Positions 1,604 to 61,391 of a stretch of DNA of 64,000 nt are shown in pieces. The DNA comes from Penicillus capitatus. Its lineage: Eukaryota; Plantae; Chlorophyta. Each line of letters starts with the position of its first letter. Position 1 is the first letter of the stretch. The notes below the pieces were generated by a model. It was not told the origin of the DNA, did no database searches, and saw only the letters and a list, made by a program, of their open reading frames with translations. A program made the position numbers and the translations under genes. The stretch covers positions 107,201 through 171,200 of the forward strand of contig OZ287711.1 in NCBI GenBank assembly GCA_965649825.1, read 5' to 3'.

Positions 1604-3461
1604 AAAGATATCCTGGAGAGATTACTGTCGACGGTGTCAAAGAAACTTTCCACGATGCTGAACGGATCTAGATATGTGTTTCTGTCTGTCTGGATTCGCA
1701 TGTTCCTTGCCTCTTTTAGTTATTTGCAAAAGCTGGCAATATGCGAAAGCTCTCAACAGTTTTTTTGTTGTCTGAGCTCTTCTAAACAAATGTTTACCTA
1801 AATCAAGGTTAAGCCTGTTCATCCCATTGCCTCGTTCCGAAGGTTGGGGCCGACTCTGAGTGTGTAGCTGTGGAGAAGACACAACGGTTTGGATAGTGAC
1901 AGTGAATTTTGAGGCGGCGCAAGACTGCGTCTCCTGTTTCATTAGTTGCGCGGAACATTGTCCATCTGTTATAAGGTCTTTGACCCCGTTCATATCCAAT
2001 CATCCTAAGCATAGAAGCATAGATCATTGAACATTGGGCTTGAACTCACTGCCACGCTGTCTCCCTTGTATACCTTGACTGAGCTGCGTGGTTCAGTGTT
2101 CCTCTCCTACCACCTCTGTAGTCTATCGACAGCAGACTTTTGTAGCTGAGTTGATATCTTGTGCTCTGACGATAGTTCCATGGCGGCTTTTATGAAGCCG
2201 TGTTGCTTAGACCACATCGATCTGCGTGTATGAAGCTCGATCTATTAAAACGTCAACAAGATTTGCAGTCCGGCGTGGGTTCGATGTTGAAACGCGGACG
2301 ACAAGGTTGGGATGAGCAGACAAGTCAGAGGATAGCGGAGGTAATTCTTTGCCAAAAAGTGGTGCTGCCTTCTTTCTGCATGTCGAATTTGTTTATCACG
2401 TCAGTTCGTCCAATGATATTCACCTGTTTTCTATAGTGGACGGAGGCGTCACGAGTCAGGCCGCGAGCGAGAGCGAGTAAAGGCAGAGCTCACAACTGTG
2501 TTCAAACAAGGTCATGTTTGGCTCAAATTCAGGTTTTGTATCCATAAAGTATTGCGACTTTCCTAGGCAAATGAGTTAGCTGGCGCCAAAAGCCGAAGAA
2601 GAGGGGCCCCTTCGCAGTACATGAGAGCCTTTTTCCCGAAGCAGTTCACAGGCACGCTCTCGGCCACTGAAAAATTGACAGCGTCGAGGTATACTGCTGC
2701 AAACACACGGATTACAGAGAGTAGAGTTCAACAGGGGACGCGCATTAAGTATCCTCATGGTGATGTGACCCGAAAGGGGACAGCTGTCCGAATTGTACGA
2801 CAGCGGGGCTAACAGCTGTCCCCTACGACAGACAGCCTAGACGATTTGATTTTTGTGCAGAATTGATTGCGAACGCATCTTTCTTAGTGTTCGCCATTCT
2901 GGACGATAACACGATAACAGTTGTACGACGATATCTGTTCTGCACGACACATAGACCAGCAGCTTTTGAACAAACCATAGGTTATCGAACTTTTCTAGAT
3001 GGTCGAAATGGTGCCTCGGGATAATGCAGATGCAGAGTCGTTTTGTATGGTCCAGAAAAAGAGAACACTGACGCGGCCAACTGGATTGTCACGTCACCAT
3101 GTAGGTTGTGAAAGTCGACCTGACGGCCGAGTCCAGGCCCGATAGCGAGTCGCGCTGGAACTCCGTCGGCAAGGCTCTGCCGAATCTAAATATTCACTTC
3201 GCGAACCCAAGAGGTTCGCCACGTTGACTAGGACTACCCGATCAAGCTGTGTGAGGTTTGCCCCTACCGCTTTCACACCAATATGAAGTGTTTGGTGAAG
3301 TTCCCACCGAAGTTCACTGCGTTACTACTTTTCTTTGTGAGTGTTAAGACGGTCCCGATTCGTGTATGGAGGCATTAGTTTCTGTATTGTTTCATTAAAG
3401 AAGCTGGGGCTTTTTAGCCAAACTCAGCAACATAAGATGGGGACTCGGCTCGTCGTTCAAA

Positions 3462-3911
3462 ATGACCCAAGCAGAAATGTTCTGCCAAGCTGCCGCGGCC
3501 GGTTTGGAACTCCCCGTCACAGATCTTGACATGAGAGATCAGATTGGACTCCAACAATCAACTGTGAAGAAGGCTATTCGTGAGATGCTGGATGCTCGGA
3601 CTCAGTCATACTTGTCCGAACAAGGAACTGGGTGTGTAATTCTACGACTGGGTATACCCTTTGAGTCTGGTTCATGCTGGATGTTGAACCCTAATCATTC
3701 GAGAGGTGAATCTTCACAGCTCAACCAATTTGTCAGTAATCACTTCAGGTCACAGGCATATTTTCACCGCTTCAACATCTCTGAAAGACACGCACTGTAC
3801 AAACACTCTATCAGACATTCTCAATTTAGAGATCACGTCTTAATGAGATGCAGTCAATTTGACTGTGAGAGAGAAGAGTTGTACGAAGAACTAGGGGTGA
3901 CCCAGAGCTAA
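3462..3911 (+). CDS. hypothetical protein (probably the last exon(s) of a multi-exon gene starting near 3.0-3.4 kb)
   Basis: 149-codon ATG ORF in AT-rich surroundings; the frame stays open upstream to a TTTTAG acceptor. No family recognised. Confidence 0.3.
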   Translation: MTQAEMFCQAAAAGLELPVTDLDMRDQIGLQQSTVKKAIREMLDARTQSYLSEQGTGCVILRLGIPFESGSCWMLNPNHSRGESSQLNQFVSNHFRSQAYFHRFNISERHALYKHSIRHSQFRDHVLMRCSQFDCEREELYEELGVTQS

Positions 3912-4955
3912 TCAGTCTGGCCGCGCATTCTGGAAAGCCCTAAACGCCTTGCTGTTCCTTTGCTAAATCTCGTAAAGCGTACGCTCAACAGATGGATTTC
4001 TCTTCCCCTAAGTTCCGATTCTGATCCTACTTTGCAGAATAATTGTTTAGACAATGTTTCATCGATAAAGGAAATACCAACCTCCTCAGCTGGCTGACAT
4101 GCTCGACTTGTCTTTACCGAATTAGAATTCACAATTCACGATTGGAGTTTTTTTCTTTGCTTTTCAATCTCCGTAGTTCAAAATAAGATGGTTTTTTGGC
4201 AGCTAGCAGTTACCAGGGTGGACTGCTTACTAGGGCCCTAAACGACACCCTGCATGGCTGATAGGTGTAAACAAACAAAAGTCATGTAAAACCGCCAACG
4301 TTATTATTATTATTAAACTCAGCAACATGTTTAAACTTTCGATAGAACGAAACCATTTCCATGTCCATTGTCGATTCTCTCCGTTCGCACGAACACATGA
4401 CGACAATTATGCCGTCGGTATGTTCAACCTTTTGACACGTGTGGACAGCGGATGGTCGAGTCGTGCAATTTCTTGCGTTATCTCTGGAATCTATCACCAA
4501 TCTTCGCCGCGTTCGCCTTGAAGAATAGCAGCAGAAACACGATGCGATTGCCGCTTCTCATACGATATCCAGGCCTTTACACCATCAACTCGGACGAGGG
4601 GAAAATCTCAAAAAGATGCGAATCTTTCCTTGTAAAGCCATGCGAGGTAATATCGCCGACGACGTTTGCAATATGCAATCACCTGTCCCACGCAAACATC
4701 AGTACACACGTATGCCTCCACTAAGAAAGGCGCCTGTTTGTCACGCGCTTCATCAAAAGACACGTACATCCCGAGTTTGCGTTTCGAAGATGCTAAGGAC
4801 TGTGTCTTGTCTTCGTCTGCCGTCACATCAGACGTTTACAGACGTTACATGCGTGTCGCTGCGGAGACTTGTCGGTGCCCGTCCCGCTCGCAGTCGAGAG
4901 AAACAGTCGTATCGTTCAACGCGACAGCCACACGTTTCGATCTCCACAGAGAACG

Positions 4956-6062: not shown

Positions 6063-7476
6063 TCAACTCGACAAGAGCGATCGCACGGTGTGCACAACTC
6101 GCAGAGCCGTCGGCAAATACAGAGGTTCGAAGACGAGTGGAAAATGCGTGTCCATGCCGCAGATGCGCTTCGGCGGTTTCTCCAGAGAGTAGAAACAGGT
6201 GTCTGCAATCTTCGAAACGATCTCAGCTCCAAAGCCTGACGTGACAGGTGCCTCGTGGCTCACCACCAGATGTCCTGTGCCACCGATCGCCTGCGCCGAG
6301 GCCACACGTGCAAACGCCGCTGACCTGTCTTGCGAACCGACTTCTGAACAGTGTCGAGATCCCAGGGGAGCAACGTCCGCAGATCCACGACCTCTGAGGA
6401 GATACCGTCCTGTTCCTGAGAGTAACAGCCATTTAGAGCCGCCCGTATGGTGCGAGACACACTTGGAGCCGTGCGGCTGCCTCCTTTAAGACCCAGACCT
6501 GGGCGCCCCATCCCACCAGGGTCACATCATTTCCTTCACGGATGATGCGTGCCTGACCCAGAGGAATCTTGTAACGTCCCTCCGGCACGGATTCCGTTTT
6601 TGTGCGATACCTACACACACAAAGAAAAGTGCTTCGGCATGTGTGACATAGAGTGAGATAGATGAACAAGATCTTCGGCTCGAAGAAAATGGCGGGGTCG
6701 GGCTCATCCACGCAGGAAAGGAACAGGCCTTTCGCCTCTGCAGGCGAGCTCGGTACCACGACCACGATGCCCGGTATATGAGTAAAGAACGATTCCGGAC
6801 TCTGAGAGTGGTAATGTCCTCCGTGACCCACAGCTCCTGAGCGTCGATCAGTTTCATCGTCCGAGGACGAGGGACGCACCATTCGGTGTCCGGATTGTCA
6901 GACTGCCACAGTTGAAAGCTCCTCCACTGCGATAGCGGTACTTGGCTGCCTCGTTGGTGATCTGATCGAATGCCGGGAAGATGTAGTCGGCAAACTGGAT
7001 CTCGGCGATCGGCGTCAATCCCATCGACGCCATTCCAATCCCCATTCCCACAATCCCCTACACAGACAAAGTCTGTCTGTCACCTGCCATTCGGAGAGTG
7101 CTTGTCGTTTGCGTTCTCGGCGAGTGGAGTGTTGAACACGCGATGCTGTCCAAATCGCTCGGCCAGACCGTCCGTGCAGCGAAACACACCACCGAAGGCG
7201 ACGTCCTCGCCAAAGATGTAGGACCTGCAGTGGTCCGTCTGTCGGTTTGCTCTGATTCTGCCTTCAGCTCGTGAACCTGCTGTTCGTCTCAAGCGTGAGG
7301 GCGAGGGCGTCGTTGATGGCCTTAAGCATCGTGACGTCCGCGCGTTTCCGCGTTGCGAGGTCCTTCTGGTACTCCTCTCCCGAGAGAGTGGCTGCCGTCT
7401 CGAGACAACGGCTGTGCGATATCCATCCTCTCGTCCATGTCTTCAGGAGCTTCGACAGAGAACCCAGTCGCAGCAT
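6063..7476 (-). CDS. BCKDHB: 2-oxoisovalerate (branched-chain alpha-keto acid) dehydrogenase E1 beta subunit, mitochondrial
   Basis: Spliced exons give [78 protein letters not shown] and [14 protein letters not shown]. The N-terminus is a basic presequence. Confidence 0.97.
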
Positions 7477-10500: not shown

Positions 10501-11078
10501 GCGATTTGACAGATGTACTGTCCAGTGGCCAGCCCAGGGTAGCGAAGGTAGACTGAAGAAGGTCTCTCTCTAAACAGCACTTTCCACGTTGCAGTCAATC
10601 GAGGAAGAAGAGAAGACGAGAATAAAGCAACGGGAGCATCACGAAAGCTCTTCTATCGCTATGAGCTCTCCCTGTGGCGATGGTTGGTAGCTGAAGGCCT
10701 TCTGTCTCCGAGGGCGCTTCGACGATGGCCATGATTCACGACACTGTGCCGAACAAACCCACCAGATCCACCACCTCCGTCACATCATTCAGCGATTTTA
10801 CCCTCTCTGGCTCTCAACACAGAAACTAACGGTATCATGCCTGTCATGACAACAAATGCTGTTCATGTCGCGATTCTGACAGCGGAGATGTAATTAGTGG
10901 TTGGCAAGTCGGTTGTCAGATTCGTTAGATCGATGTCAAATCCGCGGTATAAATGCACGCCGCGCCGTCATTCTGCAGAGAGCGCTGTTTGGATTCCCAC
11001 AGCGGTGCTTCTTTTGCCCCAACTCGGTCGTTTTGAGAGCCGCTCAAGTTTTCCCGTTCGTCCTGTCTCAGTGACGCC

Positions 11079-18004: not shown

Positions 18005-18183
18005 TATTCCGGAGCCGCGGGGTCACATCATCACGATCTAGAGCGAATGGTCGCGTTATCATTGCACGGACATTAGGAGTAGCATCTAAGTAACATGCAG
18101 AACCACTTAGACGAAGCGTTGATCACTGTTATGGAACACAAGTCGTCTCGGAAAAGTCCCGTATTCCGGAGCCGCGGGGTCAC
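18005..18183. repeat. 22-bp exact direct repeat (tattccggagccgcggggtcac) within a degenerate ~157-bp duplication
   Basis: Copies at 18005-18026 and 18162-18183, each preceded by aagtcgtct(g/c)ggaaa. Confidence 0.85.
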
Positions 18184-34400: not shown

Positions 34401-37400
34401 CTGAATGCGCAGGCGTTGCTGGGTAGAGCCGATGGCGACGGGCACGTCCACAGCGTAATGCTTTTCAACCGTAGGGCAGAAATGCGCCACGATCTTGACA
34501 CTCGAGTGCGCAGCGACGCTGCCACGTCTCGGATCGAAACGCACGACGGGAGGGTCCCCTGCACCGACGCACACCACCTCGCCGTCAGCGTGCATCTCGA
34601 GAGAGCGTACGTCGCTGAAAGAGCGCCGCCTTGTCGGCAGATTCCGAAATCCGAAATCTGAGAGGCGTATCCTCTCGGTTGTGGATGCGGATCTCTTGTT
34701 CCGCGGCGTTTCCGAGTAGCGTTTGACCGAAGTGCAGAATGGCAGGGTCCAAAGCACCAACGACGTCCGGCACTTGGCGTACCAGAAGAACGGACGTCTC
34801 GCATTCGGGATGCTGCGAGATGGACAGACGCCACAACGCGTGTTCCACGTGTTCGCCTGACGCACGGCAGATCACTTTCACCTCTTTCTCTTCGCCTGCG
34901 GGCACCGTGATCTGCGACGTCAAGCATCGAAAACAGCTTTGACCCTATGGCAGACATATCCGTCGACCTTGTCGTGGCACAGTCGAACGCCTTGCCCCTG
35001 TCGTTGGGCGAAACTGGACGTCGAACGACGAGGACGTGCGATTGGCGATAGCGAAGCTCTTTGTTTTTGCGTCTCTGCCTCCGCGGCCGACAAATCGCAG
35101 CACTCTGCGATAGGCGGATCCTTCTTCCAGTGGTAGATGAATTCGACACACGGGTGCCTTTCCGGCGCCTTCTAACCGTAGGACAATCGGTTCTGCTCTT
35201 CCCTGAGCGACACATCCGTGCAGCACCCCGCAAAGAACGCCTTCGCTTTGCGGACAGAATTCCACATCGACCTATCTCGCTGCGTTTGGATCCGGATAAA
35301 GATGGCGGCGGCGTTCGACCTGAACATCGGCCGACGGTTGGAGATATCCAGAGGATGCCGAGATGATGTGAAAGGTCTTCTGTTGCACCGAGGTGTCGTC
35401 CATCGTCCACTTGTAATCGAATCCGACGCATCCTTCGTTGCGAAGACGGAAACGCGATACAGTGCGTTCGAAGAGCGCCGTCACGTCAAAGGAAATACCC
35501 TCGACGGAGCAGCGTGCCTGAACCCGTCCACATCTTCCCTTCGCCTAAACGACAAAGACGTAACGGCAGGCTCGATGATGTGACAGCACGGTGAGGGTCT
35601 TCTCTGTCGGCGTGGCGTTTTCGCAACTAGGATCGGCGTCTTGCGTCAGGAGCCGGAGACGTTGATCCTCGAACGCGATGGCCTCGTCTGTGCGGAACGT
35701 GACGACGGCCTGACGGTGGCTTCGCGGTTGGAGCACACCGTCCATCGGCAGAATCGTCCACTGATGTGACGGCACCGTCCACGCAAACCTAAAGCCAGCC
35801 AACCTCTAGCATCGCTTGACTCTCCTATGGGACGCACTTCGTCCGTCTGTCCGTTCGGTTGTGTATGGTGAGCAGCGTAGAGGTCTCGCTGTCGACGTAA
35901 ACGTCGCCGAGGTCCAGCACGTCGCCGCCATCGCGAATCAACTCGCCTTCGAAGCTCAACGCCTCGATGAACCCTTCTCCTCTGAGCTCGACCTTGAAAA
36001 TCTCAAAGGGATTCTCCTTAACCTGTAAACGGCCTTTCAGGCATCGGACTTCAAAATTCGGCGTAGACCTGAATCGTGAGGATCTGCTGAACGACACCGA
36101 CATCGACTGGATCGAAAGAGAGCGGAATGGACTGTGTCTGACCAGCCTCGATGACAAACGCGTCGTTCGAGCAACTGAAGGGACTCGGGCTGGTTTGCGA
36201 GCACAGCAGCGTGGCGCATTGCTGGCCGGTATTCTCAAACTCCACGTGCCGCCGCCGGTGTTGCCCCGGAACAACGCGACCGAAGTCGAGACTCCGGGTT
36301 CCGTCCTCGGCCACAACGACGCCCTTCACGAAGACGACGCTCTGCCGAGACGCATCTGGACGTACAGAGGCATACCTGCAAGACTCCTGACGGAAGGGTC
36401 CCTTCGCCTTCGAAGAAGCAGCAGAAGACGGGCTCGGCATTTCCGTCGATATAAGCGCAGAAGCGTTGGCGGATCTTGTCCACCGATCGAGGGACAAACG
36501 TCACAGCCGTTGATCTCCACCCGTAGCCCGGAATTCGAACTTGGCGCTGCTCAACGTCGAGCGCCGACGTGGCGCCGTCTTCGAGAGCGAACGTAAGCGA
36601 CACAGGCAGCGGACCCGGATTCGTAAACTTCAGCCGAGCCGTTCTCGACTCCTATAACGGACACCACCTGTCTGTCGTCTGCTTTGGCGAAAGGGAACGG
36701 CGTACGCGCTCTCGGCCGCCGTCCTGTCCGTAGTTCAGTTTTCCGAATGAAAAGACGTTCAGTGCCGGGCAGTAGACGTTGTGCATGGTCGATGTCAGTT
36801 GCTGGACGATAGGGTAGTCGTCGAAGACGGCAGTCGGTTGAGCGAGATCGACCATCGGCACGCTGGATTCGCCTCGGAGCTTCAGCTCTGCGGTCGCCTG
36901 TCCCTTTCGGGCGTTGGACACGTGGACGAAGAGAGATCGCGTGAAACGTTCAATGCCTCGTGGGATGAACGAGACGCACAGGCGTTCGGTTGTGTGCGAT
37001 GGCACGGTGCCGTGCTGCCGGTCGACGGCGAAAGGCTCCAGGGAGAAGGGCCCGCTCGTATCGTCTGCGAGATTCTCGTCTGATGTGACAGGTGCGGATT
37101 CCGTCGAGAGGTGGTAGCGAAGGGGCAAGGCGCCGTCGTTTGTTATGGAGATGCTCTGCGCGTCGGGTTCAGATTCGGCGTGGCACGCAGCGAAGTCTAC
37201 GGCACCGTTGGCAGGAGAGAGGGAATAGGCAGAAAAGACGGCCTGGATGGAAACGGCGGCGTATAGAGGCGACCCGACAGCGCCCGTCTCCGTATCTGTC
37301 AGGGCGATCTCAAACGCCTTCTTTGACGTCAGCCGCAGCGCGTCGGTATCGTTCGCCAGATAACGCACCTGACACACACGAGATCAGGGCGTCAGAAGAC

Positions 37401-40400
37401 GTCGATCGCTGAGCCGCCGACCTCAAGAGACGTCTGGTCGCCTGGATGCACCGTTCCGCTTTCTGGCCCGATGCCGAATCGATTCTGTGCCCGTCCGAGG
37501 CCCCGTATATCAAAATCGAATGGATATGACCCGCTGTTGGTCAGCTGGATCGTCTTGACCGTCGCGACGGTGGCTTCGACGAGACCGAAGTCGACAGAAG
37601 AGAGGGCTGCGTCTGGCAATGTCAACTCGGCCTCAATGGCATAGCACTCGCCCTTGACCCCAACCGGCACTTCCAGTGACCGTCCCTAAGTGCACCGACG
37701 TTAACAGGCGGCTGCGTTAGGGGATCGCGATACCTTAAGGCAGAAGGATTGATCCAGCGTCCACGTTGCGTCACAAGTGGCGTCGAGGCGGACGCGTTGG
37801 CGTTGTTGCGGTTGGAGGTATCCACGGGGCGGCGAGATCGATACGTAGGAAGGCAGTGCGCTTTGCACCGTCCATTCCGTTGGCAGCAGCCCTTCGTTGA
37901 CGATCGAAAATTCCGCCGACGGTTGGGAACCCAATAACGACCGACCGAAGTCGATACCCTCCGCCCCCTTCGATGCAGGACTATCCCCTCGAGTCAACGA
38001 ACGACGTGCGTGGTCTTACGTCGACGTCGAAAATGCGTCTGAGTTTTTCTGCGGCGCCTATACAGGAGAGGGGAAGACGCGTGACGGTTGGGTTGTCCTC
38101 GACGGCGCATGTCAACCATCCCTCCACGCGACCATCTTCGACGGGGTGGGCCTGAATCGACACCGCCTGCCACTCCCCGACGCCGAGCTCGCCATCCGAG
38201 AGGCTCAACGCAAAGACATCGGCGTCTTGTTCTTCGCCGAATGCATCACGAGGTGTTTCGACGCTGAGATGTGCCGCCGCCGGAAAGGCGCCGCCATTGA
38301 CGAGGTGCAGATAGGCAACAGCCGCTCCGTCGTCCAGCGCGACCGGACCAAATTCGAGGCGCTCGAGCTCCTTCTGCCCTTCGGCCTCGCGAATATGTAC
38401 TCTCGGGACGTCGCAGACGCCTTCGAGTTTAAGCACGAGTGGCACTGGCAGGACGATGCATCGACCCGGTGTCCACACACCGAACGGCAGCTCCGTTGTG
38501 AATTCGCCAAGTCGACTCGGTTCGAAACGCACCGTGCAGACGCGGGATGCATGACACGGAAAAATCCAGCGGAAAGCGTCAAGCTCGGACGTCTCTTCCG
38601 TCTTGTCGTCAACCGTTGTCGTCATGCGAAACGGATAGAGGCTGCGAGGGGTCGCTTCGTGAGCAGGGGGTTTGTGGAGGACATGTGAGAGGTAGGGATC
38701 GGGAACGATTTCGAGGTCTCTGGGCACCAGAGGCAATGACGCTTTGATGACGCCGCGTTCGAAACGCCGACCGCAGATCGCTAGGTGCGTTCTTTCGGCG
38801 GCGGCGGCGGCTTCGTTCGCGACTTCACGAATCGCGATGAGATCCGCTGAACTCGGCGACGCTTGGAGCGCCAGCTCGGCTAACCGTCGACTCTCTTCCA
38901 GTCGGTAAAGCTCGTCGCTATCGTCGTCGGCTCGTGGCGCCACGCATCCGATGCAATGAATGTCGATATCTGCGACGGACCCTTTGCGACGCAGCAGTGT
39001 GTGCATGACGGCGGCGATGGCGTCCTGTAGCAAACACCGCCTGCCCGTTGCTGTGTCCTTTGCCACGTCAGCGCCTTACCTCGATATCAAGGACGCCGCA
39101 ATGGAAGCCGTTCATGACCCATCCCCATCGCATACGTTCGTCGTCCATCGTCTCCTGTAGGACGGCTGAGACAATGGACACCTTGATGTCTGTTTCGGCA
39201 GGCGTTTGCGTCAGGCGCTCGTCTAAGAGGAGAGCCACGAGATCCGCAAGGGTAGTGCCCTTCTCGACGCCGCCGCCGCCGCTGTCGAAAAATGCATATG
39301 CTTCTGGATGCAGCGCGTCGAGTGCGATCTCTCTGTCGCCGTGGCGCCATTCTTCGAGACAAGCGTCGAGCGAGACGCATGGCACATCGTATCTTTCCGC
39401 CAGGAGTTGCGCCTGAGTGTCTGTTTCGTCTGCGTCGCCATACACCACGAGGTAGAGTGGACGTCGCATCAGCGATGTGCAAGGATCCAATGCGCCGCCA
39501 TCTAAGCTCGTATCCTCGTTCGACGGTAGCGCCGGTGCGGGCGCCGGGAATTCGAGGGCCGTCCTGTACGCACGCATATCGGTGTCGTCGTCCAGCGGAG
39601 GGACGAAAAGAAATCCGTTCTCGTCGCAGCGACTAAGCAATGGACATAAAGTGTGATGAGCATACGGCCAGGTGGAGGTCACACTTTTGGAGCTGCTCGA
39701 GAATGGCGGCCTCGTCTTCGGACGTCACATCAAAGTCCGGCGCCGAGAGAACCGCGGGAAACGGACTATCGTTGGATAAGGTCACGGATACTGTTTGCGT
39801 TTCCTGTACCGTTTCCGCAAAGAGCACCGGGTCGAATGTGATGTGACTCGGCTCGACTCGGATATCCGGAAAGCAGACGGTCGCTTCGAGACGAAGAGAG
39901 GATGCAACGGAGGCGTTTTCGACGTTGAGCTGAAGATCCTCTTCGAAACGCCGCCCCGATGGGAGCCTCGCAGCCGCCGACGGGACGAAATGCACCTGCG
40001 CGGAACGGGCTTGCGAAAAGGCGATGGCGTTATCCATACTTCTATCGTCTGCCGAGCAGAGGGCTTAAGAATGCCGCTCTTAGGCGAGGCGTAGAAAACG
40101 GAGGACGTTTGGGTCGACGATAGACTCCATCGACCGTCGACCTTTTTCGCATTGGAGATCTGAACGTGCATCGTCTTTGCCATGCCAAGTCGGACGCTCT
40201 CAAAATCGAGCACGTTTGCCGACAGCTGCAGTCGAGGCTCGACCACTTCCGCACGGAAAGGAATAACAACGGACGGCGATTTGTGAACGTCGAGCAGCAG
40301 TACGTCTTCGTAGATCCTGTCGCCATCTGCCAAGGCGTTCGTGTCCAGTGTAACGCAACAAGACACGGCGGCTGCTGTCAGTAAGCCTTTGAGATGTGGC

Positions 40401-43400
40401 GGCGCAAACGAGATCCCTGCCGGTAAGGTCTTCCCCGTCGTAAACCGCACCTATGGCTACCGTTGTCGCCGACCGCGTCCTATTTGCGTGCGTTACCGGC
40501 AGTGGACCCGCGTTGGTCAGGGTGAAGGACTGCGAGGCGATGTCGCCTTTGGTCAGGATGCCGTAGTCCAGCAGACCACTCTCGGTGCGCAGCGCTCGAC
40601 ACCGTCTGACGTGTCGCTTGGCGAAAGCGACGGGATCTGTAACCGTCGTCGAAGAGAGAGCGTCGTCCGTCGTCTGCCGGATCTGATCGGCGATGTCTTC
40701 TCGGTAGGTATCGAGTGCACACATCGAGGTGTCGGCGTCGGATTGCGCCGTGGACGGCAGCGAGGTCGTCAGAACGGAACAGAGGCATTCTGCATGGAGC
40801 GTCACCTCAACGCCGCCGCCGTTTTCGATTTTGATCTCGAGCGTCTCGTAGAGGTGACCGGGAACAGCAATGTTCATCCATAGCTGTACCGTCGTCTCGG
40901 CGTGAGGTGACAGGTGGCCTGTAGTTGGTGCACAGTGCACGAGGGATGCAAACTGGAGACGATCCAGAACGACGTCGAAACGAAAAGGGACGGCGCCCGT
41001 GTTGCGAACGGTCAGTTTCTGCTGTGCCGTGGTGCCATACCTGCACGGACCGAAATCGATTTCTCTCGGCGTCACATCAAAACGCGTTTCGCCAGACTGC
41101 GCGACAAGAGGAACCTGACAGACGCGACGTAAAACGCAAGTGGACAGAAAACGCGACGCCTTGCCTGATAATCTGGACCGCCTTTGACGTGACAGGTGGC
41201 GCGGCACTGTAGAGAGACATCTGGCATAGCGACGTAGGTCAGCACGACACGTTCCTTCTGCCCTGGCACGAGTCGCCCTTTGATGGGCAGGATATCCAAC
41301 ACAGGCGGGCCCTCCTCCGGAATACCCTCTGCAACACGGATGACGGCTCGCTCCTAATACGAGCCTCATACCAGGTGACGTACCTGCGCCTTTGGCGAGA
41401 GACCAGTGGTAATGCGCGTCCAGATCTGAGACGTTCTCGATCACCAGTTCACGTTCGTGTATCCGACTGTGCTGAACGCAGCCGAAGTCGATCTGCAGAG
41501 AGACCAAGGTACGGTTAGTGTCATAGAACGTTGGGTATGAGTGATGTGACGTTGGCAGGATGAAAAGCGAGATTGGGTCGTCGGATCTCGCCGATGAGCT
41601 TCACCGTCTCGACGCGGTCGATCTGCTCGTAACGTATTTCGAGTTTGGCCGCGTGTTGCGTCGAATGCAGCGTGTCGATGACGGCCGGGTCGAAGTTCAA
41701 GCACAGCAATACGTCTTCATCCGGCTGCAGGCGACAACGCTCAATGGAGCAGCGAAACGGCGAGGGACAGGCAGTAACAAAAGCCACTGGCAGTCGTGCG
41801 CGATTCCTGACGCATAGCGGCGTTGCAAAGCGAGAGGGAGGTGGATGGCGGCGCACTGTATGCGCAGGTGTTGCTCCGTGGGGGACTGGCGGCTGTGTGT
41901 GTCCTCGGCGGCGTAGGTCCATTCGAAGCGCAGTTCTTTCGCCGAGAACTGGAGAAGCGGCTTCACCACTTTGGCGGCGATCTCGGTCGCCACGAGCCGC
42001 GTCGGTTTTTTGCCTTTCTTTTGCGCGATCTCGTCCAGACAATGTCTCTCCACAAACTCGCCGCAGACATGCGTTGCCGTTTGCATAGACACAGCGACGC
42101 TGCCTTTCGCCGGGATCTCGATCTCGGCCGGCTCGAAACGAAACACCTAAACGAAGAACGTCCACTGGACTGGCAATCGACACGAAAGGAAGAAGACTTG
42201 TTCAACGACGTCGTTTTCTGCCGTCGACGCTCTGTCCGTTTTCTTCGTTCGGTGCTCTCTGGACAGACAGTGCCATTTGAGGGAGGTCGCTTTTTGTCCC
42301 CTGTTGTGTAGGAGAAAGCGTTGCTCCGTGTTTGTCATCGAAAGGAGATAGCCAAGGTCGATGGCGTCAGGGATGTCGGATTGCACGCAGCTGCCTTCAC
42401 CGCGAGCCGTCAGCGACACACTCCGAGGCTCTCCATTCGTGACCCGCATTTCGAGCGCATTCCTGAACAACGCAGCCTCGTCCAGATGCACACGGACGCT
42501 GAGATCTGCGCATTCGCCTGGACGCAATGGCAGTTCTCGCGGAGAGACCTAAACAAGACGATGGTCGGCCAGAGTGCTCTCGACTGGCGGCGGCGGCGTA
42601 CTTCGAAGCAGGAAGATTCGGTTGCGAAGGCAAAGGAGATGTGCGTCGCAATGGGCGAGGCGTTCGTCAACTGAAGCGGCACTTCGACGACGTCGAGGAC
42701 ATGGACGACACCGAAAGCGATACACGCATCGACGGGGTGGTATCGTCGGTCACTTGACGCCAGATGCAGCGTCGGTCCAACGCAGTCGTAATGCACCTCG
42801 AGGGGCTGGTCGAGCAGACCAGACGTCGTCAGCTCCAGATGCAGACGCCTGGGGCCAAGCACCGTCGGCGTCACGTCGACATCGACGTCGCATTCGCCCT
42901 GCCGCGCCGCCACTTGTCACATCCGTCACATCAACAGAGCGCACCTCTGGCGGCAGCAACGGCGATGCGTGCAATGGTCGAATGTTTGCAAAGTCGAGGG
43001 ATGGCGGCTCGAGTGTGTACGAGGCTTGGAGGCCGTCGGATGTGTTGATGAGACGTGCGCGCAGGCGACAGGGGTGACCAATGAAACATTTGCCGAGATC
43101 GATGACAGGCGTTTGCCATTTCAGTCGTGGACGATCGGCGTCGCCCTTTAGTGTCACTGTCGTCAAGATCTGATCCAACCCAATCATCCTGAAGGCCATG
43201 GTCTCGTCCAGGGTCGTGGTCGTCGCATCCATCGGTGTCCACGTCACATCAATGCACGTACGATCGCCAGAATGCAGTCGACCGCGAGAGGGACGAAGAA
43301 GCAGATCGGCTCTGTCGTGCTGCAAAGCAAAGTCAAAAGACACGGCGCTCGTATTGGTCAAGTCCATCGTCTGGACGCAGGGGAATCCGATAGGCACCGT

Positions 43401-44938: not shown

Positions 44939-45022
44939 GATGGGAATGCGTCACATCAAACGGCAACAGATACATGACGCAGCAACAGCACATTTGCCCG
45001 ACTGACTGTCTCGCTGTGCGGC
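44939..45022. promoter_or_regulatory. putative bidirectional promoter between HYDIN and the LarB-like gene
   Basis: 84 nt separate the divergent ATGs; the interval contains GTCACATCA at 44950-44958. Confidence 0.5.
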
Positions 45023-46212
45023 ATGCATACACGTTCGTCTTTCCTCTCGTCTCGTCTTCTTCCCGTCAAAGGCCACACCCACCGTGTGCGTTTCGCTGGA
45101 CGTACGGCCCGTCTGGCACCGAAAGCTCGTAAGGCACTCTGCCGTCGACACCGTCGTTGAGGCCGGCCCTCTAGGAGCGCAGACGCTGTTCGACATCTTC
45201 TCTGCCGTTAGCGAAGGTCGACTCTCCCCTGTCGACGCCGTTCAGACCGTAGATGAGGAGCTATGCTATGTACCCCTTCTGCCTCGTACGTCGCTCGACT
45301 GACGCTCATCCCATTCCAGGCGCCTTCTCCGAGACGGAGTGCATTTCCGCAGATTGTCAATGGACACGGCAAGCGACCCGAGTGGATTGCTAGCCGCATT
45401 CGGGAGCTCCTTGAGGAACAGGGCAGGGCATTGGTGACGGAAATGGACCCTTCCGATTACGCTACGATTCGCAAGACCGTGCCGGGTGTCGTGTATCACG
45501 CCGGAGCCAAGACCTTGCGCATCGATGGGGAAGAAGAAGCTAGAGAGAAGCTACCGGGAACCGTCGGCATCATCTCCGACATCTCCATCCCGGCGGCGGC
45601 AATGGAGCAGCTGCATATCATGGCCGAGTTCCTGGGCTGCTACACCTTCCAGATCCCCTCACTATCGGTCACGTGTCTATCCGACATCGTCGAGCGCATG
45701 AAGAGTCCGTCCGGCATCGAGTTTCGCACTGGGACGCGTGGGTCTGACGCTTTTGCACGGTTTTAGGTGTTGCCCAGGCGAGTGTCGTTCTGGTGTTGTA
45801 TGATGAGGAGACAGCATTGCCAGATATCGTCTCCGGATCTGTCGATGCGCCTGTGGTATGGACGAGAGGCATCGCTGGGTGATGTGACAGCTTGTGCGTT
45901 CTGTAGATTTCGGTGCGTCTGGGCGATCATCTGCATCAGAAGGAACTGCCGTGTCATACGCTCTCGACGGGGACGCTGCTCTCGGCTGTCCTCTCGGTGG
46001 CCAAGATTCTGAAAACGGCCGATCGATTGAGCGTCTCGAAGACGCCGCCGTCGGCCGATCGCTTCGAAGACGGCGTGCGAAATGATGTGACGTTTGACAA
46101 GCCGATCCAGGACACATCCGAGCTCTTTGATAACGAAGTGGGCGTCCATCGCGTCAACAACGTCGTCAGCAAAGATCTGCGCGAAGCTGCGTCCGAGCTG
46201 TCTGCCGAATGA
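45023..46212 (+). CDS. plastid-targeted LarB/CpmA-like (PurE superfamily) protein with degenerate motifs
   Basis: Transit peptide, then FSAVSEGRLSPVDA, RSAFPQIVNGHGKRPEWI, YHAGAKTL, PGTVGII and ASVVLVLYDEETALPDIVSGSVDAPVISV, all collinear with the LarB/CpmA consensus. Four GT-AG introns. Confidence 0.75.
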
Positions 46213-46884: not shown

Positions 46885-48102
46885 ATGCCGCGGGCGTTGC
46901 TGCAGATGAAGGGCACGACAGGGCGACGTCTCAGCGGCGTCGTCCCACGCCGTCCGCAACGCCCTTCGCGTTCCGTCCGACCCAAAGGACGACGCCGCGT
47001 CATTCGAGCCTCGCTGATGGAGGTCTGTCTGTCCTTCACCCGCCGCCGAGAGACGACGCTGTGGCGCATGTACAGGCGGTGTCGGAGTTGTCCGACCTGC
47101 AACGCGTGACGGTGCTCTCCGAAGCGCTGCCCTATCTCCAGCGCTTTGCACAGAAGACGATCGTGGTGAAGTACGGCGGCGCGGCAATGAAGGACGCTTC
47201 TCTGAAAGTGTGACATACATCCCTTGATGAAAGGACGTGCGTGGTCTTGACGGGCTGTCACAGGAAGGCGTGATTAAGGACCTCGTCCTGCTGTCGTGTG
47301 TCGGCGTGCGTCCTGTCTTGGTCCATGGCGGCGGGCCCGAGATCAACACCTGGCTGTCGAAGCTCAACATCGAGCCCGTCTTCCACAACGGCATTCGCGT
47401 CACCGACCGTCAGACGCCGCGTGTCTAAAAGCATGTGGTCGACGGGGGTGATGCGACAGGCGAGACGATGGAAGTGGTGGAGATGGTGCTCGGTGGACGG
47501 GTCAACAAATCGCTGGTGTCGTTGATCGAGCAGTCTGGCGGAAAGGCCGTCGGCCTCTGCGGAAAGGACGGGAATCTGATCATCGCCCGGCCGATGCTTG
47601 GAGGCAAGCTCGGATTCACCGGAGAAGTCATCGGCATCGACACGCAGCTTCTGAACACCGTCATCGAGGGGAGCTACATTCCGGTCGTCGCCACCATCGC
47701 AACGAGCAAAACGGGCGACGCGCTGAACGTCAACGCCGACACCGCGGCAGGCGAGGTCCGGAATCTCCTATCGCGGATGCGAGACCATCCGGGTGTGTGT
47801 CCCGTGGGCAGATCGCGGCGGCGCTGCAGGCGGAGAAGCTCGTGTTGATGACGGACGTCCCTGGGGTGCTGCGCGATCGCGACGACGCCGATTCGCTGAT
47901 TCGGATCCTCGACATCCAGAAGACGCGTGCGGAGATTCATCACGGGATCATTGCCGGCGGAATGATTCCCAAAGTCGAGTGCTGTATCCGTTGCCTGGCG
48001 CAGGGCGTCCGTGCCACGCATATCATCGACGGGCGCCAGCCGCATTCGCTTCTGATGGAGTTGCTCACGGACCAGGGCGTCGGAACGATGATTACAGGAT
48101 GA
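46885..48102 (+). CDS. argB: acetylglutamate kinase (NAGK), chloroplastic
   Basis: [50 protein letters not shown] and GGMIPKV, preceded by a transit peptide. Confidence 0.97.
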
Positions 48103-48128
48103 TGTGACTGACGGACGTCTTTGTCCGC

Positions 48129-50260: not shown

Positions 50261-51903
50261 ATGGCGTTTTCTGTCGCGTACCGTCGTCCTTGCCGCGCCC
50301 TCCTGTTGCCGAACTCCGGCAACAGCGATGGCCAAGCCAAACCCAACCGCCTCATCGTCCCCGGCAGTCGTCCCACCCCGTCGCCCTTTGCCAAACCCCT
50401 CGTGCCGACCGAACCGCAAGACGCCCAGGGAAAACGCACGTACCGACCGCCCATGGGCTACTTCGTCCAGACGAAGGACAGGGACGCGGCTGCGGTTGAC
50501 GAGATCGACGAGGAGGCGATGATCCAGCGGCTGAATGCGGGAGCGGGACGGTGGTATGAGCTCGCTGCCTACATCCCCCGACTGAACGTCGCTGGCTACG
50601 ACGCGTATCTCATCGAACAGCTGGCGGGAATCGCCAAGCGCGAACAGGACATCTTGGTCACGGCGGCGTCTGTTCGGCAGTCCATCGCACGCCACAGTCG
50701 CCAACAGAACCTCGCGGGATACGAGACCACCATGGAGTACTTTGAGATCGAAGGTCGCACTCTTCTCACTCTACGAATGCTGAGAATCCGACAGGGGCGC
50801 ATTTCGCTCTGTACGAGCTGCGGTTTCTCGACGTGACAGACCGAGTGTCCTGTGCCGAGTACGTGGCGCGGAACGAACTGCACGCCAAAGTGCGAGATGG
50901 CTTCGCGTGATGTCTGCTCACTCTTTTGGATGGAGCACAGGAGACGCGAGATCTGGCCAGAGCGGCGAAGGAATACCACAGAAGGGAGGAGGAAGCGGCG
51001 GGATTCGAATGCACACCGGAAGACATGTGGGCCTACCAGTACTATCGAAACGTCACATCAACCCACTTGTAGCCTTCCTTCTCAGCCCTGCTGCAATTCC
51101 AGGCGCTCGAGAGCCGAGAACGGAAACTGATTGCCGCTTTCGTGGAGAAGGGACTCAAGGTTGTCCGTTCCGAGACGGCCCGGGAGAAGCTGGTAGCCCA
51201 GATGTCGCTGTCACGGATGTGACGGTGGGTCCTGTTGCGCAGGCGTCAGTGCTGACGGGCCACGAGAAGCTGCAAGACTCCGGAGATCGGATCGCACCTG
51301 CCAAGATCCACATCTACCGGCTTCTGAGTCAGGAAACGCGGTTCCGTCCCCTGCCCTACGCCGGAGAGCTCGACACGGTTCTCTGCCATTCGGAGGAGTC
51401 GCGATTTGAAGGAGGGGGGACGTCTAGGTCCACGGCACCGTCCTGAAGCGCTGTCCCGTTGCCAAGACCTCCGGCGAGTTTGGCCTGTTCAGCATGGAAG
51501 AGATGGAGATGCCCGAGCATCCGTGGAAGTGGCTGGCGCTGCCGAATTGGCCGCTCTTCTCCCACGCCAAGCGTCCCGTCGCGCTCGGAATCAGGAACTG
51601 CGCCTCGCTGTCGGTGCTCCGATCATCGATCCTCGCCAAGGTACCTTCGCTCGTCAAGCGATCGACACCGTGAGCGTGCTCTGTCCGCAGAGCAAGGCAG
51701 AGGCGCTGAGACTGAGCGGCAGCGGCTTGTTGGTCGCAGACGCCTCCGTCCACGAGGCCCGAGACCCCGAATCGTACTACCTGGTCTCTGCGGCGCCGCT
51801 GGTGGCGCTGAAGTCAGTGGAGGAAATCGCCGAGCAATCGCACGAGGTTCTGGCGAAGGTGCTCTTCGTGTGTCGTCCCCCAGACATGGACAGCGAATTC
51901 TGA
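50261..51903 (+). CDS. RAF1: Rubisco accumulation factor 1
   Basis: [57 protein letters not shown] and C-terminal VLFVCRPP match the RAF1 HTH, alpha and beta domains. Confidence 0.9.
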
Positions 51904-53791: not shown

Positions 53792-53920
53792 TGCAAAGCG
53801 AACGAACAAACACGCGTTCGAGTGAATTGTCTGCTCGGTCACGCTCATGTGCGTCACGCCGACATGACCGAGCATCCAAGACGTCAGTCACATCACTGTC
53901 CCCCTTCGCAAAAAATCTTC

Positions 53921-56142: not shown

Positions 56143-56532
56143 ATGCCTCGACTGCTATCCGTACTGTTAGCTTCCTTGGTGCTCTGGAAGCATGCAGAAG
56201 CTGTGGAGTGCTCGGGCGAATGCGAACAACTGCAATGTGCATATTTTTCCCAGTTCTTTTGCTCATGCGAAAACGTTGATACTTTATGTTCCACTCACGA
56301 GTACTGCCGTCGGGGACGCTGTTCACCTCTTGGCCAAACAGGTTGCTCGAAAAGAAAAAGAAAACACCTGTGCGGACCTACCATCTGCATCGGTTCAGAC
56401 TGCAGCGTAACCAGCATTGGCATTGACGGAGATGGAAATCAAGTATACTACAGAAACGCAGCGCTGAGGCCACAACATGGCGTTCTGTTGGCGTGGATTC
56501 TTCTATCGACATTCATACTCGCAATACTCTGA
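56143..56532 (+). CDS. small Cys-rich secreted protein with hydrophobic C-terminal (GPI-like) tail, paralog 1
   Basis: Signal peptide MPRLLSVLLASLVLWKHAEA, 12 Cys, and terminal GVLLAWILLSTFILAIL*. Confidence 0.75.
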   Translation: MPRLLSVLLASLVLWKHAEAVECSGECEQLQCAYFSQFFCSCENVDTLCSTHEYCRRGRCSPLGQTGCSKRKRKHLCGPTICIGSDCSVTSIGIDGDGNQVYYRNAALRPQHGVLLAWILLSTFILAIL

Positions 56533-57057
56533 CAGCCTCTGCATTGCCACGAAGATTTGGTCTTCTTTGAGTGACTGACTCACTTTTGTTTTCCCTGCTT
56601 CCTTCTTTCTGTGCATGTATCGCTCCGCCTTTACCGTTTTCTTCAGTGTATGTTTCACATCCACTAGTTTTCTGCGTCCTCATGAGGCGCTTTGCGGTCC
56701 GTTACCCGACCATGGCGTTGTGAAATGTGGAATGCGTTGTCCAAGAGAACTAATTATTCAGTCCATTCATGTGTTGAGAATGAGACAGTACTTGTACATG
56801 GGAAACTCTTCTGCAGTGAAGAGACGGACAGATGGCTGGCAAAGATCGAACGTATCCCGCTTTAAATGACATTGATTGATCCCGACGGTCTAGACGAACT
56901 GCCTTGGCCTCGTCCAGGCGCCAGTCATTCGCAGCCGCAGAGAGAAGATTTTGAGAACAACGGCTGCGAACGAGCAAACGGACTTCCGCTCTCTGATTTG
57001 GCTGCATTCACACAGCGTAACCTTGTACTGGCTGAACGTGGACCAACTCTGCCCAGG

Positions 57058-59126: not shown

Positions 59127-59391
59127 AGACATTCCCTTCAGAGGCCGGCTATGTCACACGTGTCGCGTCGAAGCCCGTCAGCTCTCACCGGCGACATCGC
59201 GACCACGACCTTTCGACGTGACAGGTAGCGAGTGTTCCGAGCGCCTTCCAGTCCGCAACACACCTCACTTTGTTACACTGGTTTCGTGTTAGAAGAGAAC
59301 AGCGTCCCTCTCTTAAGGGGCCATTCGGTGACGATGTCCATTCGTTCTTCCTCGTCATCACACTTTGCAATACGTCTGGCTCCTAAGCGCA

Positions 59392-61074
59392 ATGCAGATG
59401 CCGCTTTCGGAAGCCGTCGCCGATTCGCTCATCTGTTCGCCTTTGGAAGACGACGACATCTTGCGCAGAGTTCTGGGATACCTCGGAGGGGACGGCCTGC
59501 AAGAATGGCGCCGCGTTTGCAGAGGATGGTACAGTGTCTGTCGAGAGATGGAGGCGCATCTCAGTGTCACCGACGTCAATGCCCTCCGTCGGGCTTCGGA
59601 GTCCTTTCCTCGCGCCACGGAGCTGAGTTATCGACTTCCGGGCAGGTCCGTGGAGACTGTATTCGACGACGATGCGATGGATATGGTTGACGAGGACGTC
59701 GGAGAAGAGCCGCACGTCGTCACGAACGCGGCGCTGGAAGGACTGGTGACGTTCGGGTTCCTGCGGAGACTGCAGCTTTGCCTCGTCGAAGAACAGACGA
59801 CGCCCGAGGCGTGGGCACAGTGCTTCCGTCACCTCAGCGGCCTCCAGGACCTCAGTCTCTCATTTCATAGCTGTCGGGAACTGCTTCCAAACGTGCAGAG
59901 TTGCCTGAATGGTCTCACTGCGCTGACGGCTCTTGAGAGTCTTGAGGTTCTGTCGGCCTTCCGGACGGGAGCGACAATGCCGCGGATGAAAGGGCTCACC
60001 GCCCTGCAGACGCTCATCGTCAACATGGAGCTCCTCTTCGACGCAGGCAGAACCTACGCTTTCCAAGACTCGACGCGTCTGACGGCCCTGTGCGCGTTCC
60101 GGTGTAGAGAAGACGAACAGCCGTATAGTCTGGCGTACCTGCTCCAGGTTAGCGACCTCCCGTTTTGCCGGCGTTTCCAGCGAAACGCTTTCTGTTTGTA
60201 GGCGGCGTCTTCTTGCGCACCGCAACTTCGCAGTCTCGCCATCGACGCGTGGCAGTCGCTGGAGTGGAATGAAGACAGTTGTCTATTTCTGCGCAGTTTT
60301 GAACACCTCGACCGACTGGCTCTATCCGCTCCTATGGAACTCATGGAAGACGCGATGTATCGCGCTTCTCCGCTTTCCGGCATCAAAGACCTCACCCTGG
60401 AGGGCTCACTCACAGAGACGCACGTGCTTTATCACCTAACAAGTTTCACGAGACTCGAGAAGCTATCGCTGTTTTCTCACGAGCCCGTGTATCAAGACGT
60501 GGGCATCTTCCTTTCCGAGCTTCCGAAGCTGACGGCGCTGCTCGTTCCGGACATCAACGTGGGAGGGGCACTGCGTTTTATGCCGAATCTAACCTGCCTG
60601 TACCTTGGTTCTCTCCACGAACAGGATAAGCAGAGCCAGACAGAGATCCTCTCCTCCCTCAATTGCCTGTGTCGCCTCGAAGAGCTCGATTTCGACTGTC
60701 ACCTCGTTGTAACATCTCACCTAATAAATCTGAGACGCCTCAAGGAGCTCCACGTGCAATGCTGCGAATTCGACGAGGAGTTCGTGCCCTTCTTGGCGGA
60801 GCTGACAGAGTTGACGAAGCTTGTCTTTGTATCACGGATTGACGAAATCGCCGAGGGGGATTGTCGCCGCATTCGCAACATGAGTCGCCTGCACTCGCTG
60901 ACGCTGGAAGAGAATCGCCACAATCCCTGCTACTCCCTGCTGGCGGGCGGTCAGATGGAACGACTGAGAGAGCTTAGACTGGAAAGCTTTCAGCTGACAA
61001 GGGCAGAGTACTGGGAGTTTTTCAGGCAGTTTCCCTCTCTGCGGCAGCTGCATTCGAGTGTTGTTCCTTGTTAA
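59392..61074 (+). CDS. F-box-like / leucine-rich repeat protein
   Basis: N-terminal DDILRRVLGYL..WRRVCRGW F-box-like motif followed by many LxxLxxLxL repeats; one intron at about 60148-60200. Confidence 0.82.
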
Positions 61075-61391
61075 TCAATTCATTGATCGTTATTCGTTCA
61101 CCTCGAAAAAGCTGTTGCTCTCGCGCACGTGTCGAAAGAACTGAGTTGGTTGCTGCTGATTTAATTTGACCCGTGAAGAATTTGCTGGAATTCTCTGGCT
61201 GGCATGCGTCGAGGACGGAGACGAACGGGACGATTCCTTAGCCTCTTCGTTGCATGACGTCGGTGGTCTGGTCTCTGGCACCCTCTGCGATCCTTCGAGC
61301 GAAAGGGGAAGGGATGCAACGATGGCGGCGCCGCCACAGCTCCTTTAAATCGCGTCTCCACGTCACATCACGGCAACGAGCGGTGCGTCCG

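Follow-up and report, generated by a model that had tools for sequence, protein, structure and literature searches.

A single nine-nucleotide word, TGATGTGAC (in the opposite orientation GTCACATCA), recurs throughout a 64-kb stretch of DNA of the green alga Penicillus capitatus (assembly GCA_965649825.1, contig OZ287711.1, positions 107,201 to 171,200; this whole stretch is referred to as the window), and its copies are retained at the same positions in a sister species, which identifies the word as a real, selected DNA signal. We tentatively favor the idea, which we rate at somewhat below an even chance, that TGATGTGAC is a lineage-specific cis-element that would be read on double-stranded DNA by an abundant, highly specific protein with an architectural role along transcription units.

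An exact search detected 23 matches in the window, 9 on the plus and 14 on the minus strand, which are spaced at about one per 1–3 kb across genes, tiny introns and the gaps between genes. A previous inspection of the letters only, subsequently designated the sequence-only reading, had claimed at least 23 recurrences in both orientations, and indeed all 23 coordinates matched exactly. Dinucleotide-preserving shuffles of the window yielded a mean of 0.80 matches and a maximum of 3, and none of 100 shuffles reached 23. The word ranked first among all 9-mers of the window, above simple repeats of the GCC type, and 8-mer sub-words thereof ranked second and fourth. Markov models of order 0 to 6, for which the motif was masked in training, predicted 0.4–0.8 copies. 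When the motif was left unmasked, the order-6 expectation climbed to 9, because the sub-words consist of the motif copies themselves. The 30 nt on each side of the 23 copies were unrelated to one another upon inspection, and blastn comparison of the ±100-nt flanks with the motif masked returned only trivial overlaps of neighboring windows, so that the copies represent an isolated 9-bp word and not a repeat family. Full-text literature searches for the 9-mer and the 8-mer retrieved primers and unrelated uses only and no description of the word.

For comparison, we used a sister genome, designated species B, which is contained in assembly ERZ26696514. Contig ctg303800 of this assembly is collinear with window positions 30.6–62.2 kb at 81–85% DNA identity, while contig ctg303728 matches positions 4.9–17.1 kb at ~80% DNA identity. 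The two contigs overlap at 98.8% (L008 14315-20426 vs. L001 1-6126), and L001 17870-21386 matches L005 17783-21299 at 99.9%, which suggests that the overlapping contigs are haplotypes or assembly overlaps of one organism and not separate species. Genes were modeled with a semi-Markov gene finder, which first included a pairwise-conservation term on the species B alignment and was then retrained with learned splice matrices and an intron-length prior. Family assignments were supported for HYDIN, MCCB, argB, Raf1, the aspartic protease, SDR and patatin, while the label “LarB”, which the sequence-only reading had given to the gene at 45263-46212, was not supported, as this gene had no Pfam hit. 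Forty curated introns (GT-AG in both species, window 32000-54000) had a modal length of 51 nt, most of them measuring 44–59 nt, and exhibited a degenerate donor, in which the GT precedes either A or C, with YAG as the acceptor. At 41071 and 42925 the versions of the gene finder disagreed, and the exon and intron calls were settled from the species B alignment by eye; the intron call at 42925 is backed by a 1-nt indel just upstream in the alignment. The 23 copies are listed below, “sense” denoting TGATGTGAC on the coding strand of the host gene and “antisense” denoting GTCACATCA; conservation refers to species B.

2761..2769, plus strand: intergenic, ~1.2 kb downstream of a MatE-like gene; outside the species B homology, which ends at window position 2457.
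4822..4830, minus strand: no gene modeled; exact in species B (L001 14809).
6521..6529, minus strand: coding, sense, in a gene of the 2-oxoacid dehydrogenase E1-beta-like type; CGATGTGAC in species B, which differs by a single synonymous base.
10779..10787, minus strand: intergenic, ~1.1 kb upstream of the patatin gene 8245-9636; exact at L001 8884, flanks diverged.
18022..18030, minus strand: unannotated GC-poor DNA, inside the 17.1–30.5 kb segment that lacks a syntenic species B counterpart.
32473..32481, minus strand: HYDIN intron 32516..32465, sense, 8 nt before the acceptor; exact at L008 11771.
33807..33815, minus strand: middle of the 47-nt HYDIN intron 33831..33785, sense; conserved.
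35576..35584, plus strand: positions 6-14 of a HYDIN intron (donor 35589), antisense; conserved, in contrast to the remaining intron sequence, which diverged and gained a 6-nt indel.
35762..35770, plus strand: HYDIN exon (..VPSHQW..), 19 nt inside the exon, antisense; conserved.
37081..37089, plus strand: HYDIN exon (GTC ACA TCA = VTS), antisense; conserved.
39724..39732, minus strand: HYDIN exon (..FDVTSE..), sense; conserved; 115 nt away from 39839, with which it makes up an exact inverted pair.
39839..39847, plus strand: HYDIN exon (..PSHITF..), antisense; conserved.
41071..41079, minus strand: HYDIN exon (..RFDVTPREIDFG..), sense; conserved in a coding-type pattern.
41542..41550, plus strand: supplies the donor GT of the 58-nt HYDIN intron 41550..41493; not conserved, with GTACGAACACGCCG at this place in species B.
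42925..42933, minus strand: 46-nt HYDIN intron 42944..42899, sense; near-copy GGATGTGAC at 42916-42924 directly after; both conserved.
43243..43251, minus strand: HYDIN exon (..CIDVTW..), sense; conserved.
44950..44958, minus strand: approximate HYDIN 5' region, between HYDIN and the divergent plus-strand gene; conserved.
45880..45888, plus strand: intron 45856..45906 of the plus-strand gene 45263-46212, sense; conserved.
46083..46091, plus strand: exon of gene 45263-46212 (..RNDVTFD..), sense; conserved.
48100..48108, plus strand: last MCCB intron, where the 3' regions of argB and MCCB converge, in antisense orientation to MCCB; conserved, both flanks diverged.
51052..51060, minus strand: supplies the donor GT of the 51-nt Raf1 intron 51052..51102; conserved in both species.
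53887..53895, minus strand: gap between SDR (NOL-like) and aspartic protease genes, ~100 nt upstream of the protease ATG (53791); conserved beside a 4-nt indel.
61362..61370, minus strand: ~290 nt downstream of the leucine-rich-repeat-like gene 59548-61074; conserved, flanks diverged.

Two copies (2761 and 18022) have no alignable species B counterpart and were left out, and 19 of the 21 assessable copies were exact at the orthologous position. The exceptions are 6521, which differs by one synonymous base, and 41542, which is absent from an otherwise shared intron and was gained or lost through point changes and a 5-nt indel within this pre-existing intron. In a 21-kb block of the alignment, 15 of 16 copies were conserved, as compared to 23% of all 9-mers (26% in coding, 11% in non-coding sequence; p ~4e-9). 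For the non-coding copies of this block the ratio was 6 of 7 against 11% (p ~1e-5), and the copies at 48100, 51052, 35576 and 61362 remained unchanged amid diverged flanks or beside indels. When all 7-, 8- and 9-mers with at least 5 copies in the 21-kb alignment were considered, only TGATGTGAC and its sub-words were outlying in abundance plus conservation. Copies with one mismatch took a position between background and exact copies, 6 of 12 being conserved. A tandem doublet of TGATGTGAC followed by GGATGTGAC (9-nt period, window 42916-42933) is kept in both species, and species B possesses an additional 10-nt tandem near-copy at the orthologue of 32473 (L008 11761-11779). The collinear region of species B contains 27 copies in 39 kb, and the word was again the top 9-mer at unlinked species B loci (7 copies in L001 and 8 in L002, each in 21 kb).

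The copies are distributed over introns (8), coding sequence (8) and intergenic, untranslated (UTR) or unannotated DNA (7); the sequence-only reading had estimated about seven coding copies, which comes close to our count. Relative to the host gene, 9 copies are in sense and 7 in antisense orientation, and inside HYDIN alone the numbers are 6 and 5. Non-coding DNA represents about one fifth of the 21-kb block, yet it holds half of the copies, so that the previously noted preference for non-coding sequence is borne out, though exons are strongly enriched too. Copy number roughly tracks gene length, as the 13-kb HYDIN gene carries 12 copies, while genes of 1–2.5 kb carry 0–2. Gap lengths in the dense block had a coefficient of variation of ~0.7 with no clear period in spacing.

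The eight intronic copies start at intron positions 1, 1, 6, 12, 17, 25, 25 and 36, in introns of 46–69 nt. Of four copies that had been described as lying just before the acceptor, this is true for 32473, while 33807 is located in mid-intron, 35576 starts 5 nt after the donor and 35762 is coding. In agreement with the sequence-only reading, the GT of the word acts as splice donor twice, at 41542 and 51052. These locations, the donor GT supplied by two of the eight intronic copies, and the presence of UGAUG as well as of AUG directly before UGA in the word could speak for a signal at the level of RNA, such as a splicing enhancer, a branch-point helper, a C-box-like small nucleolar RNA element or a start-stop mini-open reading frame (AUG UGA). 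However, the orientation to the transcript is 9:7 with both orientations equally conserved, the intron positions covered span nucleotides 1 to 44, seven copies lie outside modeled genes, and scans of the window for Rfam families and tRNAs gave no match. By strand symmetry, an RNA-level signal is largely refuted, and we regard it as very improbable. Symmetry with respect to host genes and lack of a fixed intron position likewise uphold the earlier argument against a branch-point signal. Pairing of inverted repeats at intron ends, as in euglenids, was considered in view of GTCACATCA at donors and TGATGTGAC close to acceptors, but was rejected upon mapping of the introns, since intron positions vary, partners are absent and the exact pair is exonic.

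Still less probable is the proposal that the word is the footprint, i.e. a terminal repeat, of introner-like or miniature transposable elements. Introners are families of whole introns that resemble one another; they are known from green algae and other protists (PMC9860276, PMC3879977). The window likewise derives from a green alga with many introns, some TGATGTGAC copies are located at intron ends, and GTCACATCA begins two introns. Moreover, inverted pairs are found in HYDIN, one of them exact with a distance of 115 nt, and three near-pairs. All four share the same arrangement, GTCAC[A/G]TCA then TGA[T/C]G[T/A]GAC, 96–121 nt apart:

35480/35576, one mismatch.
39724/39839, exact.
41071/41185, one mismatch.
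42925/43046, one mismatch.

The number of these pairs is near chance expectation, but their distances cluster. In contrast to introners, the copies have only 9 bp in common and lack flank similarity, two thirds of them are not intronic (8 of 23 are), and they are old and orthologous. The exact inverted pair sits in coding sequence, and the copies do not regularly coincide with splice sites, as the intronic ones cover intron positions 1 to 44. Unlike neutral relics, orthologous sites were kept while the surrounding intron decayed, and a pattern of presence/absence polymorphism is missing, as 19 of 21 copies are orthologous and 41542 differs inside a shared intron. The introner interpretation offered by the sequence-only reading thus fails on flank similarity, on the intronic share and on the divergence of orthologous introns around the word.

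Next, we consider coding sequence. Trusted coding sequence (16.9 kb) contains 7 copies, as compared to 0.35 under within-gene shuffling of synonymous codons, and none of 1000 shuffles reached 7. The enrichment in the window therefore survives codon-aware as well as Markov backgrounds. In sense orientation, coding copies always read xxT GAT GTG ACx (Asp-Val-Thr), as a TGA is present in either of the alternative frames, while all three frames are in use among the antisense coding copies. The tripeptide DVT occurs 7 times in trusted coding sequence, whereas 1.6 occurrences are expected from composition, and four of the seven are encoded by the exact word, though GAT and GTG are minority codons. 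The codon-shuffling result and the DVT excess indicate that the pressure acts on the DNA sequence and extends into protein sequence. Strand symmetry, the spread over exons, gaps and introns, codon-aware enrichment and conservation in place between species all support the element at the level of DNA that had been proposed initially.

When one mismatch was allowed, 55 matches were obtained in the window, while 19 were expected. The 23 exact copies are faced with 32 one-mismatch copies over all 27 variants (17–19 expected), and the excess of the latter is confined to positions 4 and 6, with 9 copies each as compared to ~2 expected. Positions 2, 3, 7, 8 and 9 are nearly invariant. Among 58 copies, 57% have a G immediately 3' of the word, and A is hardly ever found at the position thereafter, so that the motif including its tolerance can be written TGA-t-G-t-GAC-g. 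This tolerance pattern points to a protein-DNA interface and not to uniform base pairing with a nucleic-acid guide.

Several known sites were compared to the word. Since a bHLH gene is present at 30754-31287, we considered an E-box/bHLH site (CDEI, M-box), but the core is GATGTG and not CATGTG (CANNTG), and TCATGTGAC, the E-box version, has 0 copies in the window; hence, the word is neither of the bHLH nor of the CDEI type. In its GTCAC core, it is similar to Drosophila Motif 1 GGTCACACT and yeast CDEI GTCACATG, which may serve as a lead only. Equally as a lead only, the direct repeat of TGAT and TGAC (TGAT-G-TGAC) is reminiscent of TALE-homeodomain sites (PBX-MEIS TGATTGAC; the tandem TGAC cores of plant BELL-KNOX). 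However, the spacing between the half-sites in TGATGTGAC exceeds that of the PBX-MEIS site by one base, and TALE-homeodomain sites are developmental promoter and enhancer sites, while TGATGTGAC occurs at ~1 per kb in gene bodies. An origin of the word through decay of a motif with CpG (such as TGACGTGAC) was rejected as well: CpG variants are only mildly enriched (4 and 3 copies), but CpG is not depleted (frequency ~0.093 vs. ~0.075 expected from base composition) and the T-form is conserved.

The distribution along the window is uneven. The GC content steps from ~0.49 to ~0.59 at ~30500-32000 (1-32000 vs. 32001-56000), which coincides with the place where a rearranged region rich in paralogues gives way to a collinear block of housekeeping genes. 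In the collinear block at 32–54 kb, which is GC-rich (59%), the density of the word is 0.77 per kb. It drops to 0.16 per kb in the left part, which is GC-poor (50%; 5 copies in 32 kb), and to 0.10 per kb at 54–64 kb. A segment of 13.4 kb (17.1–30.5 kb), which includes two patatin paralogues and has no syntenic counterpart in species B, contains one copy, and a patatin-rich locus of species B contains one copy in 21 kb. Some 1.4 kb at 55398-56804 are missing from the collinear species B contig.

Species B carries ~10 extra copies, while 2 are extra in the window. At the extra positions of species B, the window shows transition variants, which are often CpG-bearing (TGACGCGAC, GTCGCATCA, TGACGCAAC, GTCACGTCA); two of them go along with amino acid differences, namely AAS vs. 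VTS in the protease and DAT vs. DVT in HYDIN. A tandem duplication of ~844 bp in the window (14239-15622), which comprises the near-identical open reading frames 14239-14778 and 15083-15622, carries GTCACTTCA in both copies where species B has the exact motif. As only two species were compared, these changes are not polarized.

These data bring up an alternative that we consider unlikely, yet ahead of all others, which is a self-propagating, “self-marking” genome signature comparable to DNA uptake sequences or Chi. In this case, biased repair, conversion, nuclease protection or DNA recognition would favor the exact word, which would then accumulate in tolerant positions of long-resident DNA without a local function of each site. 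Known examples, namely the DNA uptake sequence (DUS) of Neisseria, the uptake signal sequence (USS) of Pasteurellaceae and Chi, involve one exact 8–12-mer per lineage at ~1 per 1–5 kb, located inside and between genes, conserved among relatives and rare in recently acquired or rearranged DNA; DUS and USS occur in both orientations. The word shares with them the single exact form, a density of ~1 per kb in genes and gaps, conservation in the sister genome and scarcity in rearranged DNA. In favor of such a signature, the exact form is strongly preferred over near-copies, both orientations and coding as well as non-coding sequence are used alike, no second such word is present in the genome sample, GC-poor, rearranged and paralogue-rich DNA is depleted, the differences between lineages are clustered transitions, some of which change amino acids (AAS to VTS, DAT to DVT), and species B has the larger number of extra sites. 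For the dominance of the exact form, the scarcity in unstable DNA and the clustered substitutions by which copies appear or vanish, a signature word is as good an explanation as the cis-element. However, tolerance at positions 4 and 6 is equally expected of a binding protein, the two-species comparison does not separate gains from losses, and the difference in density may simply track gene density or GC content. The systems also differ: TGATGTGAC resides in a eukaryotic nuclear genome with spliceosomal introns, for which machinery of the competence or RecBCD type is not known; Chi shows a strand skew that follows replication, while the word does not (9 plus vs. 14 minus); and DUS and USS often form inverted pairs in terminators, which was not seen for TGATGTGAC. 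To our knowledge, no mechanism of this kind operates in a eukaryotic nucleus, which counts against this alternative. That a nuclear genome would indeed carry a single signature word of a type otherwise known from bacteria alone, spread by biased repair, conversion or protection of self-DNA, e.g. against giant viruses, even at the cost of amino acid changes, appears slightly more doubtful still.

Two further alternatives are more remote. The word could be recognized by a sequence-specific DNA modification enzyme, namely a methyltransferase that acts on adenine or cytosine, or by a protein reading the resulting mark, and would then serve as an epigenetic tag along genes. Strand symmetry, stringency over 9 bp and two permissive positions are encountered in many modification enzymes, but sites of modification systems are usually neither 30-fold enriched nor positionally conserved, and heavy CpG methylation is unlikely as CpG is undepleted. 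We rate this possibility as improbable, and marginally more so a meiotic site, i.e. a determinant of recombination hotspots or a site of homologue pairing that would be bound by a dedicated protein. A meiotic role would fit the higher density in the GC-richer block, as GC-biased gene conversion near hotspots would give, and the orientation-free occurrence in genes and gaps alike. On the other hand, hotspot motifs tend to erode through conversion, whereas 90% of the sites are conserved in place here, and no local GC peak is seen at the copies. The RNA-level and introner explanations are contradicted by the tests described above and rank, together with modification and meiotic sites, below the signature word.

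In the green lineage, the nearest functional analogue is the plant intron-mediated-enhancement motif TTNGATYTG (Gallegos and Rose, bioRxiv 10.1101/269852). This motif acts from introns, the 5' UTR and coding sequence and does not depend on splicing, but its effect is limited to a distance of ~1 kb from the transcription start. TGATGTGAC differs from it in sequence and is spread along the 13-kb HYDIN gene (12 copies) and in 3' gaps; moreover, TTNGATYTG is degenerate and is not known to be positionally conserved, whereas TGATGTGAC is conserved in place. A second point of reference is provided by sites of chromatin-organizing proteins. Yeast Reb1, Abf1 and Cbf1, Drosophila M1BP, which binds Motif 1, and insulator/CTCF systems each rely on one dedicated protein and on abundant, orientation-tolerant, conserved sites of 8–12 bp. 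However, sites of such architectural factors are concentrated at promoters or domain borders and are far sparser, while one third of the TGATGTGAC copies are exonic and the density is ~1 per kb.

The window is also contained in a 6.93-Mb contig of the long-read metagenome assembly ERZ25074695, at a distance of 26–90 kb from one of its ends. With regard to the host, gene content of the window is eukaryotic and green-algal, including a HYDIN-type flagellar Ig-repeat protein, the Rubisco accumulation factor Raf1, MCCB, a plant-type aspartic protease and an SDR. The argB gene encodes an acetylglutamate kinase with a transit-peptide-like N-terminus. Its spliced product is 64–72% identical to those of many named green algae but close to none of them, and in a maximum-likelihood tree it forms a long branch that is weakly grouped with Bryopsis. 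By gene content and argB, the host is placed among the core chlorophytes. The 22.7-kb argB locus of Bryopsis contains 0 copies of TGATGTGAC and no comparable word, in line with lineage specificity, and a scan of JGI metagenomes with a HYDIN exon retrieved no relatives. The bHLH gene (30754-31287, plus strand; HLH, bHLH_IRO3) adjoins HYDIN and is conserved in species B. Three paralogues of a patatin-like phospholipase, all on the minus strand, have 75–81% DNA identity to patatin genes of species B, of which more paralogues are found on several contigs:

8245-9636, minus strand: patatin-like phospholipase.
21921-23330, minus strand: patatin-like phospholipase.
25976-27364, minus strand: patatin-like phospholipase.

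Another dispersed word, CAGAAAACG/CGTTTTCTG, was found 9 times in the window, with both strands represented. Patatin paralogues contain two of these occurrences, and the one at 41145 is not exact in species B. Its positions are:

5678, CAGAAAACG/CGTTTTCTG.
12641, CAGAAAACG/CGTTTTCTG.
14871, CAGAAAACG/CGTTTTCTG.
23204, CAGAAAACG/CGTTTTCTG.
27250, CAGAAAACG/CGTTTTCTG.
33208, CAGAAAACG/CGTTTTCTG.
41145, CAGAAAACG/CGTTTTCTG.
42212, CAGAAAACG/CGTTTTCTG.
50265, CAGAAAACG/CGTTTTCTG.

Returning to the cis-element interpretation of TGATGTGAC, strand symmetry, indifference to reading frame and splicing, codon-aware enrichment and site-by-site conservation indicate recognition of the word in double-stranded DNA as well as an importance of the individual copies. 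A protein as reader is suggested by the degeneracy pattern, and both its protein nature and the effect of its binding are inferred. As TGATGTGAC is the sole such word and is dense inside genes, it is unlikely to be the site of an ordinary promoter factor, which suggests an architectural role; indeed, it resembles neither a classical promoter switch nor a signal for splicing. In such a model, an abundant, highly sequence-specific protein would bind TGATGTGAC (core TGA-t-G-t-GAC, usually then G) in either orientation, and purifying selection would maintain individual sites. These would be placed wherever the local sequence tolerates them, i.e. in exons (as Asp-Val-Thr when sense), 51-nt introns, UTRs and gene gaps, at a density of ~1 per 1–1.5 kb of conserved, gene-dense, GC-rich DNA, so that a 13-kb gene holds a dozen sites and genes of 1–2.5 kb hold none to two. 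The likeliest job would be in the architecture of chromatin or transcription units, and among the candidate roles are maintenance of gene bodies in an open or expressed state, insulation of genes that are packed tightly, and phasing of nucleosomes.

Several observations weigh against this interpretation. Dominance of the exact form implies a stringency above that of most factors. Only 2–3 of 23 copies are promoter-like, as judged from a position upstream of a start codon (44950, 53887, perhaps 10779), and 8 of 23 lie within exons, whereas classical transcription factor sites cluster at promoters. The five-fold gap in density between the blocks would be explained equally well by drive or by an age effect. 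Finally, and with a bearing also on the nucleosome-linker mark that the sequence-only reading had listed among its options, there was no compositional sign of a nucleosome-free region or of a phased array around the sites, and no periodicity or asymmetry of GC or CpG phased on the motif was detectable within ±600 bp.

If a single protein reads a 9-bp word at ~1 per kb along genes including their exons, this would represent a mode of genome organization that is undescribed for eukaryotes, a dense, sequence-encoded “zip code” of gene bodies that biases codon and even amino acid choice. It would provide a handle on how compact algal genomes, with introns of 51 nt and nearly abutting genes, keep transcription units separate or active, and it would yield a practical rule for designing transgenes in algae of this kind. 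If, however, the word is maintained by a bias in transmission, bacterial words of the uptake and Chi type would have gained a first counterpart among eukaryotes.

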